Shown here piece by piece: positions 40,643 to 47,905 of a DNA stretch of 52,279 nucleotides. The position numbers were made by a program, and so were the translations under genes. The DNA comes from Octopus bimaculoides. Its lineage: Eukaryota. The stretch's first letter is position 1. Every line of letters starts with the position of its first letter. The DNA lies in NCBI RefSeq assembly GCF_001194135.2, contig NC_068989.1, forward strand, positions 16,621,803 through 16,674,081, written 5' to 3'. The notes below the pieces were generated by a model. It ran no database searches. It was not told the DNA's origin and worked only from the letters and a program-made list of their open reading frames with translations.

Positions 40643-41381
40643 GGTTTGTATTGACAGTAAATTTACCTGTATAAGATGTTCTATGCAATGTTTCTCTATT
40701 TTTCATTAACAATTTTCTGTCACTCGCTCACTCTCTCAGCATAGAATTTTAACAGTTTGTTCTACTAGAAATAGCAGTCAAATCTCCGTTAAAACACACT
40801 ACTTGTCTTAAGAAAGGAGATGACATGTTAGACAATGTAATCATATATATACAGACAGGATGGTCATGGTTACAGAATAGACCTGCATCAGTGGTTAACA
40901 ACGATGGTCAGAATACATAAAAATATAGCCATCAAATCACACCACCAATCACTAACATAATTATAATACCAAACTGCCATAAGTAATTTTATTGACAGAT
41001 TTCTTGTTCATTTGCTTGCTTATATGAAAATGAATTTATAACAGTTGAAAATATTTAAAAATGAGACAAAATGAGGGAGCTCCTATGTGGTTGATCGAAT
41101 TGGAAGAAATAACAGCCAAATTTCACTTAAATCATACCCTACTGAATTTTTTTTTTCTAAATTATATGACACATTTAACAGTGGAGTCCTAGATATACAA
41201 GAAGAGAGATGCTCACGATTTAAAAGCCTTTGATCAACAGAGCTCATCTATCAGGGCTAGCCTGGGGCTAATTAACAATAGAATAATCACATAAAAGAAC
41301 CAAGAATTCAAAATTTATAAAAGTAAAGAGAAACAAGTTGGTTCACCATCCATACATTTCTTTACCATTCTACTTCTATTT

Positions 41382-41417
41382 GAATAATAAATTCAACCTC
41401 GAAACGTAAAATAGCGG
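41382..41417 (-). promoter_or_regulatory. Conserved intronic element, copy a (58 nt into intron 1 after exon 1a)
   Basis: GAATAATAAATTCAACCTCGAAACGTAAAATAGCGG versus 47071-47105: one substitution and one 1-nt indel. Function is inferred. Confidence 0.6.
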
Positions 41418-41475
41418 TCACTTACTATATAATAATAATGACGATGTCACTGATGATAATTAAAATTAATCTTAC

Positions 41476-41478
41476 CAT
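41476..41478 (-). CDS. TUBA: Alpha-tubulin gene B proximal exon 1a coding part (ATG only); leader about 41597-41479; intron to 37353
   Basis: Minus strand CCATT ATG|GTAAGATTAATT; ATG-free leader of about 120 nt; gives MREC when joined to exon 2. Confidence 0.75.
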
Positions 41479-41594
41479 AATGGATTTTGGATCTTAAGAT
41501 AATTTGAAAGACGAAGATGAGACTGTAGTGGTATTAGTTGTTGTAGATGCTGCAGTTGTAGCAGTCGCTGGGAGGTATGGTTGATGTAGTAGTA

Positions 41595-41660
41595 CTGCAA
41601 TGTTCGCTTATGGATTCGATATATCCTTAATGAGGCCAAATATTGGTTATGAACGTCTGA
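41595..41660 (-). promoter_or_regulatory. Putative promoter 1a of gene B: CCAAT (41646-41642), TATA-like CATTAAG (41632-41626), TSS about 41597
   Basis: Spacing of about 30 nt from the TATA-like motif to an Inr-like GCAGT; homologous block at 47841-47905. Confidence 0.6.
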
Positions 41661-42335
41661 GATGGTACCATGATTTTTAGTGTATCCACGTTTTAGAGAA
41701 AGCAACATTTGATAATATAGTTACATACATACTATATAACATACGCAGTTTCGAGTTACGTCTTTTTCGACTTTACGTATTTTTGAAAAGAAATCAATGA
41801 AGAAAATAATAAACCTCGACTTCAGTAGATTTTTATCCGACTTTACGTCGTCGGTCTCAGCAAATATACTTAAAATTATGAAAATTTTTAAAAACCCACC
41901 TAAATACCTTTACTGAGGAGAAAAATCAAATAATACACATGTTAAAATACGTAGAAACCATTTATTAAAACTGATAAATTTTTGGAAAATGTCTTTTCGT
42001 GTTAAGTTGTTTCTTGGAAGCAATTACCGATCTATGTTGCGGTATGCCTACATGTAGTATGAAAATGAGACAGTGACTGCTGTATCTTTGCTCAATCAGG
42101 TCTGACCTAGGGCTAAACAAGAAACACATTTGCACAAAGTCTAATACGTACACAAACACTAAAGAGGAATAAAATATGAAAGGCATGTACATTCGCAAAT
42201 ACACAAAGTAGTTTAGTAGTTTACCGTAACAGACAACAGACTGTCATTCCAACGTAAACACGCAGACAACGATAAACAATAGAAGTATCTAAATAGATTA
42301 TCATATACACGAACACATGCATATATTAATCGACG

Positions 42336-42570
42336 CAGTGTATTTGGTAGATGGAAACTACGTAAAGCCCGTCGCGCGGTCTCATATGTGTATGTGTGAG
42401 TCTGCCCCACCACTTGTCAACTGCTAATTTGGTTCCTTACGTTCCGTAACTTAAAGGTCCGATTGAATAAATAATACTAGACGTAAAATAAGTACTAGGA
42501 TAGATTCAATCGTATAACTCTATAAGGCTCCAGCATAGCCGCAGTACAATAACTGAAACAGGAGTAAAGA
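42336..42570 (+). mobile_element. Degenerate CORE-like SINE (family D), 3' part
   Basis: TTTGGTAGATGGAAACT...AAGCCCGTC...GCTCCAGCATAGCCGCAGT...ACTGAAACAGGAGTAAAGA. Confidence 0.7.
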
Positions 42571-45888: not shown

Positions 45889-46100
45889 TTCTTTTCTATT
45901 CTAGGCACAAGGCACGAAATTTTGGGTGGAGGCCAGTAGATTAGATCGACCCCAGTACGCAACTGGTACTTAATTTCTCGACCCTGAAAGGATGAAAAGA
46001 AAGTTGACCTCGGCAGAATTTGAACTTACAACGTAAAAACAGACGAAATACTAAGCATTTTGCCCATCATACTAACGTTTCTGCCAGCTCGCTGCCTTGG
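45889..46100 (-). mobile_element. SINE family B, full length, same tail type as the second monomer at 9624
   Basis: Reverse complement AAGGCAGCGAGCTGGCAGAAACGTTAG...AATTTCGTGCCTTGTGCCTAGAATAGAAAAGAAT. Confidence 0.88.
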
Positions 46101-47070
46101 GTTGTTTGAATATTGTTGAATCTGTTACAGTTGGTGAGCATTGAAGCCTTCGAGTAACAGGTTTGTTTGTCTATTTAACCTATTAAGACTATATAAGAGC
46201 CAATGGGAGAGCTTTACGTGGTAGCTCGAAATAGCAGCTAAAAAGTTCAAATCAGTCCAACACAGTGGTTCTCAATCTTTTAGGCTTCAAATTTGGAGGG
46301 GGAAAGTAGACGTTTAGCATATTGTCTTAAAACATACTTCCGTACAATGACGCTCAAGTCTTATTTTAAATTAATAATTAAGCACACCTATGTGCCTCTC
46401 TCTCTGTCATGCACTAGCACATCTTTTGAAAAACACTCCTTAAACGTTTAAAAAAAAAATACTTTTAATCCAAGTTTGCCGACCAGAGGAAAAGCTACTG
46501 GTACATATTTTATGGAGCCCAGGGTTATAAAAAGTTATGTTGTCTCTAATGATGAATGTGCGGGGGTGAGACACGATACGAAGATAAATATATGTCCATG
46601 AATGTCTATGCAGTGACATGAGCTGCCAGAATAAACAGTTATCACAACTACTGTCTTCGTAAGTCACCACTATCGTTTACATGTTTTTGTATTGTTATAA
46701 ATTATTATCTAATTTTGATCTGTAGATTTCACAGATCCCGTGTCCATTCGAGGACGTCAGTGCTTGAAGCACAAAACAGCCACATATATAAACCAGTGAG
46801 TGAGTCTGCTTGGTTAAGCTACTACAAGAAAGAAAAGAAAAGAAACCCAATATTACCCAAACCATACCAGATTGTCTTGAAATATAAAAGGAAGAACACA
46901 TTGAAATAATGGAGTTCTAGGTAAACAAATTGATGAGATGGCTATGTCCTGAACGGAGTTGACCAGCAACTATAACAATAATCACATAAAAAGTCTTAAG
47001 CGCGGAGAGAGAAGAACTAAAGCTGTGTGTCAATTTTTTAAAGAGCAATTTTCATATTTATGACCTAGCT

Positions 47071-47105
47071 GAATAATAAATTCGACCTCGAAACGTAAAT
47101 AGCGG
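47071..47105 (-). promoter_or_regulatory. Conserved intronic element, copy b (downstream of exon 1b)
   Basis: GAATAATAAATTCGACCTCGAAACGTAAATAGCGG, near-identical to 41382-41417. Confidence 0.6.
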
Positions 47106-47731
47106 ACACTCGTTAAATAATAATAATAACGGTTTTAAATTTTAGCAAAAGGCTAGAAGATATTATGGGAGGATAATCGACTACATCGACCCCAGCGCTT
47201 AACTGGTACTTATGTTGAGGGCAGAACAAAGGCGAATTAGAAAATGAAACAAAAATGAGAGGGGGGGGGTCTTTACATCGAGTAAATAGGAGAAAACAAA
47301 ATCTTATTGATAAATAATTATAGTACAAAATAAGAAAAAGGGATTCCCAAAATGGTGAGGTGATGGGACCCTGTAGGGTGATCACGCACAGCAACGGATA
47401 GCTCTGGCATGCCAAAAGCAAGTTCTTTCTCCCAGGGTTTTTTTTTTTTTTTTTTTTTTTTTTTTTTTTTTTTTTTTTTGCTCATAGTTAAGAGTGAATC
47501 CCTTTTGCCACTCTCTCACAACTTTCATAAAAATTACTGGAGGACAGACAGCATCTCCCTCTCTATCACATTCATCTTCAAATGATACTTAAAAAAATTG
47601 ACGAAGGTTTTGACCAACCGCGTTCACTACGCAAATTCTTTCGCCAGAGCTTACCACCTGACAGAGGAAAGAAAACTTTCCGTTCTTTAGATAATACGTC
47701 ATAGATGATACTTAAAAGAAATTAATCTTAC

Positions 47732-47734
47732 CAT
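47732..47734 (-). CDS. TUBA: Alpha-tubulin gene B distal alternative exon 1b coding part (ATG only); leader about 47843-47735
   Basis: Minus strand CCACT ATG|GTAAGATTAATT; leader and promoter are homologous to exon 1a; no upstream ATG; the only compatible downstream acceptor is exon 2 at 37352. Confidence 0.65.
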
Positions 47735-47840
47735 AGTGGCTTTTGATTTCGTTCAAGATATTCGAAAAACAAAGATAAAATTGAGATAGTGATTGTTGTT
47801 AGAGTAGGTACCGCCGAAGGTGTAGTAGCAGTAGTCGCAC

Positions 47841-47905
47841 AGCAATATTCGCTCACACGGACTTGATGTATCCTTTATGAGGTCGAAGATTTGGTTTGAC
47901 GTCTG
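47841..47905 (-). promoter_or_regulatory. Putative promoter 1b of gene B: CCAAA (47894-47890), TATA-like CATAAAG (47879-47873)
   Basis: Aligns with promoter 1a (TCAGACGT..AACCAA.....CCTCAT.AAGGATA.ATC.A.TCC...AGCGAA.ATTGC). Confidence 0.55.

Follow-up and report, generated by a model that had tools for sequence, protein, structure and literature searches.

Two homologous one-codon first exons upstream of a single alpha-tubulin body in Octopus bimaculoides

The alpha-tubulin gene considered here, termed gene B, raises the question of why a single coding body should be preceded by two homologous first exons, each of which encodes only the initiator methionine. Gene B lies on the minus strand of a stretch of 52,279 nucleotides (hereafter the window) from the Octopus bimaculoides assembly GCA_001194135.2, chromosome CM046609.1; window coordinates are converted to those of the record by adding 16,621,802. 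The two first exons, together with their promoter-like sequence, leader and splice donor, are referred to as cassette 1a (proximal) and cassette 1b (distal). The explanation that appears probable on the sequence evidence is that gene B has two alternative promoters, each with its own first exon consisting of leader and ATG, and one shared body, forming an ordinary alternative-promoter pair. A preliminary description of this DNA had proposed two promoters with ATG-only exons feeding one body and leaving the protein unchanged, and this proposal is supported by the R-E-C start of exon 2 and by the records of a gene-position index. The two-cassette arrangement is itself already on public record, as a coding start at each ATG.

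Anatomy of the two cassettes

The spliced model of gene B, which joins the ATG to exons 2 and 3 on the minus strand (Table 1), encodes a full-length alpha-tubulin of 450 amino acids with the N terminus MREC. The product matches XP_014770964.1 and XP_052826400.1 exactly and is 96% identical to the alpha-tubulin of Enteroctopus dofleini. The database loci for this product are 100% identical to the window, N runs included, and represent the same assembly rather than an independent one. In gene B (37352), as in a second alpha-tubulin gene in the window (gene A, 24123), exon 2 opens with AGG (Arg2) after a CAG acceptor, which places a phase-0 intron immediately 3' of the initiator codon. Because exon 2 starts at Arg2 after this acceptor, and continues with Glu3 and Cys4, a one-codon exon 1 is required for each of the two genes.

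Two homologous blocks on the minus strand, at 41274-41679 for cassette 1a and 46968-47926 for cassette 1b, each carry an ATG followed directly by GTAAGATTAATT, and the two ATGs are 6,256 bp apart. The window contains exactly two occurrences of the 15-mer that comprises start codon and donor (ATGGTAAGATTAATT), each on the minus strand (41464-41478 and 47720-47734), against a chance expectation of 0.35 occurrences with up to two mismatches. In a sensitive blastn self-comparison, the homology between the cassettes resolves into three collinear pieces. The first pairs 41446-41679 with 47698-47926 (67% identity over 244 columns, E = 1.5E-21), the second coincides with a conserved intronic block (85%, E = 8E-14) and the third is a short intronic island. 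Across these pieces the offset between the copies shifts from 6,252 to 5,689 bp, and the detectable homology is confined to about 400 bp. The preliminary description had reported two such blocks about 6.25 kb apart with an identical ATG and donor, as well as an insertion of about 0.57 kb in the distal block, all of which is confirmed.

That insertion measures 566 bp and begins about 35 nt past the 1b donor. Given its A44 run and the CGT(T)ATTAT sequences at both flanks, which may represent a target-site duplication, the extra sequence was apparently gained by 1b and not lost from 1a, and it may consist of one or two retroposed elements. It also holds a 16-nt repeat of the start of the intron (TTTTTTTAAGTATCAT, 123 nt apart). 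No further copy of it was found in the window, and a Pfam search returned no match for five nearby open reading frames (ORFs), including one of 102 amino acids within the insertion.

The identity between cassettes 1a and 1b is patchy, amounting to 15/15 over the ATG and donor, 58/69 in the intronic block and 96/161 in the leader; the difference between intronic block and leader is supported by a Fisher test (p = 2E-4), and in the middle of the leader, at a 13-nt indel, identity drops to 25%. The leaders have thus diverged as previously described, with start codon and donor kept. Since either branch may be the source of a difference between the copies, this unevenness would imply constraint on both lineages, or else patchy gene conversion between them. 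The intronic block is most economically viewed as a candidate DNA-level regulatory element, and it is not present in intron 1 of gene A. Rfam returned no match anywhere in the window, this block included. No conserved RNA fold was detected for the block (z = -2.4 for the 1a copy), and a reading as RNA structure or miRNA was dropped, since the 1b copy folds no better than shuffled sequences.

Upstream of the start codons, a motif alignment places a TATA-type box 46 nt ahead of a conserved leader block in all three cassettes of the window (1a, 1b and that of gene A). The block common to the three is CCTCAnnAAnGATAc, or CCTCA(T/C)(T/A/G)AA(G/A)GATA(T/C). From the positions of these boxes, transcription is predicted to start near 41650 and 47897, with leaders of about 160-170 nt. 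A CCAAT/CCAAA box and a TATA-like CAT(T/A)AAG had been singled out earlier as the promoter motifs. Both motifs exist, but the roles given to them were probably mis-assigned: CAT(T/A)AAG falls inside the conserved leader block, for which gene A reads CACGAAAG, a sequence that is not TATA-like, and CCAAT/CCAAA is situated downstream of the TATA box and upstream of this block, approximately where a TATA-directed start would fall, and has no counterpart in gene A. The starts formerly put at 41597 and 47843 rest on these motifs and are accordingly doubtful, although both sets of starts are predictions.

The ATG-free character of the leaders, which formed part of the same claim, was borne out. The closest upstream ATG precedes the start codon by 193 nt in 1a, 221 nt in 1b and 190 nt in gene A, and intervals of that length make up 3.4-3.7%, 2.2% and 3.7%, respectively, of the ATG-to-ATG intervals in the window. 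Each leader has an in-frame stop 7-8 codons ahead of the start codon (TAA at 21 nt in 1a and TGA at 24 nt in 1b), which leaves no room for N-terminally extended products. Long 'Logan' members of the protein cluster, considered as possible 5'-extended tubulins, were ruled out and are annexins.

The gene-position index for GCA_001194135.2 places the same 450-aa product (P0121) at two places on the chromosome. One record (L001, 10001-15590) corresponds to window positions 41478-35889 and runs from the 1a ATG; the other is a 3-nt record (L001, 3745-3747, also L002, 10001-10003) that corresponds to 47734-47732, exactly the 1b ATG. There are also two RefSeq accessions, isoform X1 and isoform X2, with an identical 450-aa sequence. 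The 3-nt record is interpreted here as marking where the coding part of a second transcript model of gene B begins, because a protein-homology predictor would not by chance place a one-codon exon 10 kb from the next coding exon, and this reading fits two isoforms that share one sequence. The joining of both first exons to the same exon 2 is therefore supported indirectly, by annotated coding starts rather than by junction reads.

In the mechanism that is proposed, the two promoters would give rise to two pre-mRNAs of gene B. From the 1a transcript a 4,123-nt intron (41475-37353) would be removed, and from the 1b transcript a 10,379-nt intron (47731-37353) with the whole 1a cassette inside it; exon 1a would be skipped in 1b transcripts unless a usable acceptor lies upstream of it. 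Both transcripts would use the donor AUG/GUAAGAUUAAUU and the acceptor 37353/37352, and with the same donor and the same acceptor both mRNAs would encode the same 450-aa MREC protein, so that only promoter and 5' untranslated region (UTR) differ. Where and when gene B is transcribed, and how the leader is translated, may vary between the promoters. The distal cassette has a canonical TATA box and an ancestral-like leader, whereas the proximal one has a degenerate TATA box and an apparently faster-evolving leader with a 13-nt insertion. It is conceivable, if rather speculative, that the two are sub-functionalised, with 1b and 1a serving different tissues, stages or translational control and with the 68-nt intronic block (85-88% identity) acting as a shared enhancer.

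Table 1. Features of the alpha-tubulin genes in the window (window coordinates)
Feature	Position	Strand	Evidence or remarks
Cassette 1b, canonical TATA box TATATAAA	47921..47928	-	46 nt upstream of the conserved leader block; aligns with the 1a and gene A boxes
Cassette 1b, predicted 5' leader	47735..47897	-	Predicted start about 30 nt past the TATA box; ATG-free; block CCTCATAAAGGATAC at 47868-47882
Cassette 1b, start codon (sole coding part of exon 1b)	47732..47734	-	Gene index: first coding piece of the 450-aa tubulin product
Cassette 1b, splice donor GTAAGATTAATT	47720..47731	-	15-mer search; 12/12 identical to the 1a donor
Cassette 1b, 566-bp insertion just past exon 1b	47132..47697	-	Lacking in 1a; A44 run; CGT(T)ATTAT at both flanks
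Cassette 1b, conserved intronic block	47065..47131	-	blastn; 85-88% identical to 41376-41443
Cassette 1b, second short intronic island (TTTTATGTGATTATT)	46968..46991	-	blastn; final detectable homology with 1a
Cassette 1a, degenerate TATA-like box ACTAAAAAT	41673..41681	-	46 nt upstream of the conserved leader block
Cassette 1a, predicted 5' leader	41479..41650	-	Predicted start; ATG-free; block CCTCATTAAGGATAT at 41621-41635
Cassette 1a, start codon (sole coding part of exon 1a)	41476..41478	-	Gene index: the 450-aa product (41478-35889) is annotated from here
Cassette 1a, splice donor GTAAGATTAATT	41464..41475	-	15-mer search
Cassette 1a, conserved intronic block	41376..41443	-	blastn; 35-100 nt past the donor
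Cassette 1a, second short intronic island	41274..41296	-	blastn
Gene B, 10-N assembly gap in intron 1	37457..37466		Between cassette 1a and exon 2; beside a (TA)n run; distance to the exon 2 acceptor 105 nt
Gene B, exon 2 (shared acceptor exon)	37130..37352	-	Opens R-E-C (AGG GAA TGT) after the CAG acceptor
Gene B, exon 3 (stop codon included)	35889..37015	-	Spliced model
Gene A, first exon	15361..15537	+	TATAAAA within 15361-15369; block 15408-15422; ATG 15524-15526; donor GTAAGTTAATT; homologous to 1a and 1b
Gene A, body	24123..25580	+	Exon 2 24123-24345, exon 3 24454-25580; about 95% identical to the gene B body

Gene A and the history of the cassettes

The window contains a second alpha-tubulin gene, gene A, which is convergent with gene B, lies on the plus strand about 10 kb from it and encodes a protein that differs at 16 of 450 residues. 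Neither this gene nor the 46-nt TATA spacing, the relative rates of the cassettes or the gap at 37457-37466 in intron 1 of gene B had been mentioned in the preliminary description. Because the span of gene A in the gene index is 10,057 bp, its start codon is placed at 15524-15526, in the context CATC ATG/GTAAGTTAATT. In total, the window therefore holds three ATG-only first exons for two alpha-tubulin bodies. The gene A leader is about 130 nt long, and its ATG-only exon lies 8.6 kb upstream of exon 2 (intron 15527-24122), within an intron that contains four assembly gaps (16108-16481, 19005-19759, 21155-21164 and 22084-22335). A search of the assembled window with an nhmmer cassette profile found no fourth cassette; a second gene A cassette could sit hidden in one of the intron 1 gaps.

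The gene A cassette provides an outgroup-like comparison for the other two. In a three-way alignment, 1a and 1b are 67% identical, 1a and A 49%, and 1b and A 53%. In leave-one-out nhmmer searches, chosen to avoid circularity, a profile of 1a and 1b has the gene A cassette as its best non-self match (E = 4E-4), and the gene A cassette alone detects 1b (E = 9E-5). Where all three cassettes align, 54 changes are private to A, 23 to 1a and 13 to 1b, and on the basis of these counts the cassette tree is taken to be ((1a,1b),A), which would place the duplication in the B lineage after the separation of A and B. Cassette 1b thus appears to be changing no faster than 1a; the direction of the difference is opposite to that of a decaying relic, although it is not significant.

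According to the proposed history, a unit of about 400 bp was duplicated once gene B had split from gene A, and the two cassettes are the result. It is also possible that a whole-gene tandem duplication was followed by loss of the distal body, and either origin fits present use of 1b. The window alone does not separate the two; neutral sequence as old as the 1a/1b split would have diverged beyond alignment.

The bodies of genes A and B (24114-25582 on the plus strand and 37361-35887 on the minus strand) are about 95% identical, with the exons at 96% and intron 2 at about 92% with two small indels. Their similarity sets in no more than a few bases from the exon 2 acceptor and stops 2 nt past the stop codon; alignment fails for the 3' UTRs and for the final 300 nt of intron 1, and the first exons are about 50% identical. 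Codon differences between the genes comprise 37 synonymous and 16 non-synonymous ones, the latter clustered in the acidic C-terminal tail. The pattern is suggestive of gene conversion that was restricted to the coding body and ended exactly at the coding boundaries.

Alternative explanations and the surrounding sequence

The most serious alternative, although it seems unlikely, is that cassette 1b is a silent or near-silent relic of a tandem copy whose body was deleted, and that the second model in the annotation stems from splicing that is predicted or at noise level, and not from a promoter in use. An origin of this kind had been raised in the preliminary description, where 1b was the orphan of a deleted tandem gene. 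The layout is compatible with it, given that the cassettes lie 6.0 kb apart without a body between them, as deletion of a tandem-copy body would leave them, that the insertion past the 1b donor displaces the conserved intronic block and that homology over only about 400 bp fits a very old duplication as well as a small one. However, 1b retains a canonical TATA box, a 221-nt ATG-free leader, a start codon and a donor that matches the 1a donor at 12 of 12 positions, it has accumulated fewer private substitutions than 1a (13 versus 23), the gene A cassette still detects it in the nhmmer search, and public annotation records a coding start at its ATG. None of the expected signs of decay (a lost ATG or donor, upstream ATGs, a degraded promoter or faster evolution) was found in 1b, and a tblastn search of 41700-46950 for a remnant of a gene body downstream of it yielded only noise. 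The ATG-free leaders, and a 1b that is apparently not evolving faster, argue against a dead relic. The orphan idea is thus possible as history, and an orphan origin is compatible with present use; only the silence of 1b would be a true rival to a pair of working promoters.

That the arrangement is an artefact of assembly, with a mis-joined or collapsed region or haplotypes placed in tandem and a true locus of one cassette per body, is highly improbable. The assembly is rich in gaps, with ten N runs in the window, one of which is the 10-N gap beside a (TA)n run in intron 1 of gene B, between 1a and exon 2, and gene bodies that are 95% identical are prone to collapse. Against this, the cassettes are not separated by any gap, as there is no N run within 41275-47905, and gene A has a third, more diverged cassette on its own strand. 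At 67% identity with several indels, the two copies are too diverged for haplotypes or a duplicated contig end, and this form of the artefact is rejected. Whatever the gap at 37457-37466 contains is downstream of both cassettes, so the succession of 1b and 1a without an intervening body stands regardless.

Comparably little credence is given to the idea that 1b is the first exon of another transcript, either a non-coding RNA or an unannotated gene, with a different acceptor somewhere in the 6-kb interval between the cassettes. In principle, a donor may be joined to any acceptor that lies downstream of it, but the idea has no positive support. No other gene is called in the interval or within 10 kb upstream, and the interval consists mostly of simple repeats and an element resembling a short interspersed nuclear element. 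In agreement with the earlier finding of neither a second tubulin body nor a gap between the cassettes, tblastn (word size 2, E up to 100) detected no tubulin-like translation at 41700-46950, all matches having E >= 5. A kept ATG in good context and an ATG-free leader are sensible only for a translated mRNA, and the gene index links the 1b ATG to the 450-aa tubulin product.

Several observations weigh against two working promoters in gene B. The 1b ATG record is only a 3-nt range, and its meaning as the start of a second transcript model is an interpretation of the index. Look-ups of the exact protein yielded the genome record alone, and a search with the 128-aa N-terminal fragment found no match above 92% identity and none from octopus. 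The 1a TATA box is degenerate. The difference in rate between 1b and 1a (13 versus 23) does not reach significance (binomial p = 0.13), an appearance of constraint could be produced by patchy gene conversion between the two cassettes, and the 10-N gap in intron 1 of gene B could conceal sequence.

The sequence around the cassettes contains several repeats. A dispersed repeat of about 400 bp is present in three copies (4972-5436, 34925-35316 and 51208-51599) that are 92-96% identical and occur in both orientations; one copy lies just 3' of gene B and another upstream of cassette 1b. An older family, with 70-87% identity over about 170-220 bp and also in both orientations, is represented at 9236-9828, 13210-13614, 19933-20163, 30233-30448 and 45885-46098, the last copy being located between the cassettes. 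Also between them is a (GA)n/(CT)n microsatellite (43774-44206) with internal periodicity of 52 and 104 bp, which gives rise to spurious ORFs of 115-118 amino acids. Finally, a GC-richer stretch at 7350-9100 on the plus strand (49% GC at 8001-10000) includes several broken ORFs, one of them with LDQSKAFDRVDH, a sequence typical of reverse transcriptases of long interspersed nuclear elements; the assignment is tentative, with no Pfam match at E <= 0.01 in the three ORFs tested.

Relation to known systems

It is very common for a gene to have alternative promoters whose choice affects nothing but the 5' UTR, and the joining of different first exons to one exon 2 is general in metazoan genes. Gene B resembles these genes in having two first exons, each with its own promoter-like sequence and donor and with no obvious acceptor, and a shared exon 2. 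Unlike typical alternative first exons, those of gene B are recognizable duplicates of each other, and the ATG is duplicated together with the UTR instead of residing in the shared exon. A literature search found nothing specific on octopus tubulin promoters or on alternative first exons of alpha-tubulin genes, nor on this locus, and the one paper found on octopus alpha-tubulin mRNA is confined to 3' UTRs.

The canonical structure of animal alpha-tubulin genes, in which exon 1 contains the 5' UTR and only the ATG and is followed by a phase-0 intron after codon 1, is found in genes A and B and in the gastropod Littorina saxatilis. Vertebrate and Drosophila alpha-tubulin genes have an intron at the same position. 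In the L. saxatilis gene (CM074570.1, locus L004) an ATG followed by GTAAGT lies at 10001-10003, and a 2.96-kb intron separates it from exon 2, which begins at 12966 with CGT GAG TGC; the ATG-only first exon is therefore old. Unlike the canonical gene, which has one first exon, gene B has two. The L. saxatilis gene (L004, 10001-25776) has at least six coding pieces over 15.8 kb, compared with three coding exons in the octopus genes, and two extra nearby tblastn matches to residues 40-75 (13232-13333 and 13407-13502) may reflect duplicates of, or alternatives to, part of exon 2.

Tandemly duplicated first exons with their own promoters in front of constant exons are likewise seen in variable-first-exon arrays (UGT1A, the clustered protocadherins). 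In those systems, however, the first exon encodes a large variable domain, whereas exon 1 of gene B encodes only methionine, is present in two copies and leaves the protein unchanged.

In tubulin autoregulation, TTC5 recognises the nascent N-terminal MREC of alpha-tubulin (PMC10403363). Both predicted gene B mRNAs keep MREC, and both would be substrates if the octopus has this pathway, although autoregulation concerns the protein and mRNA decay and not the duplication of promoters. It does show why a gain of promoter that preserves the N terminus might be tolerated. Because the start codon stands alone in exon 1, duplication of about 400 bp would suffice to supply a second promoter and leader with the protein and its MREC intact. 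The wider importance of the locus is small, given that the arrangement is a common one and that its coding starts are already annotated. If the cassettes are indeed sub-functionalised, they would be a clean natural case in which duplication of a one-codon exon uncoupled regulation from protein isotype while the MREC signal was kept. The locus could illustrate, on a small scale, regulatory divergence beside protein homogenisation in a cephalopod tubulin family.

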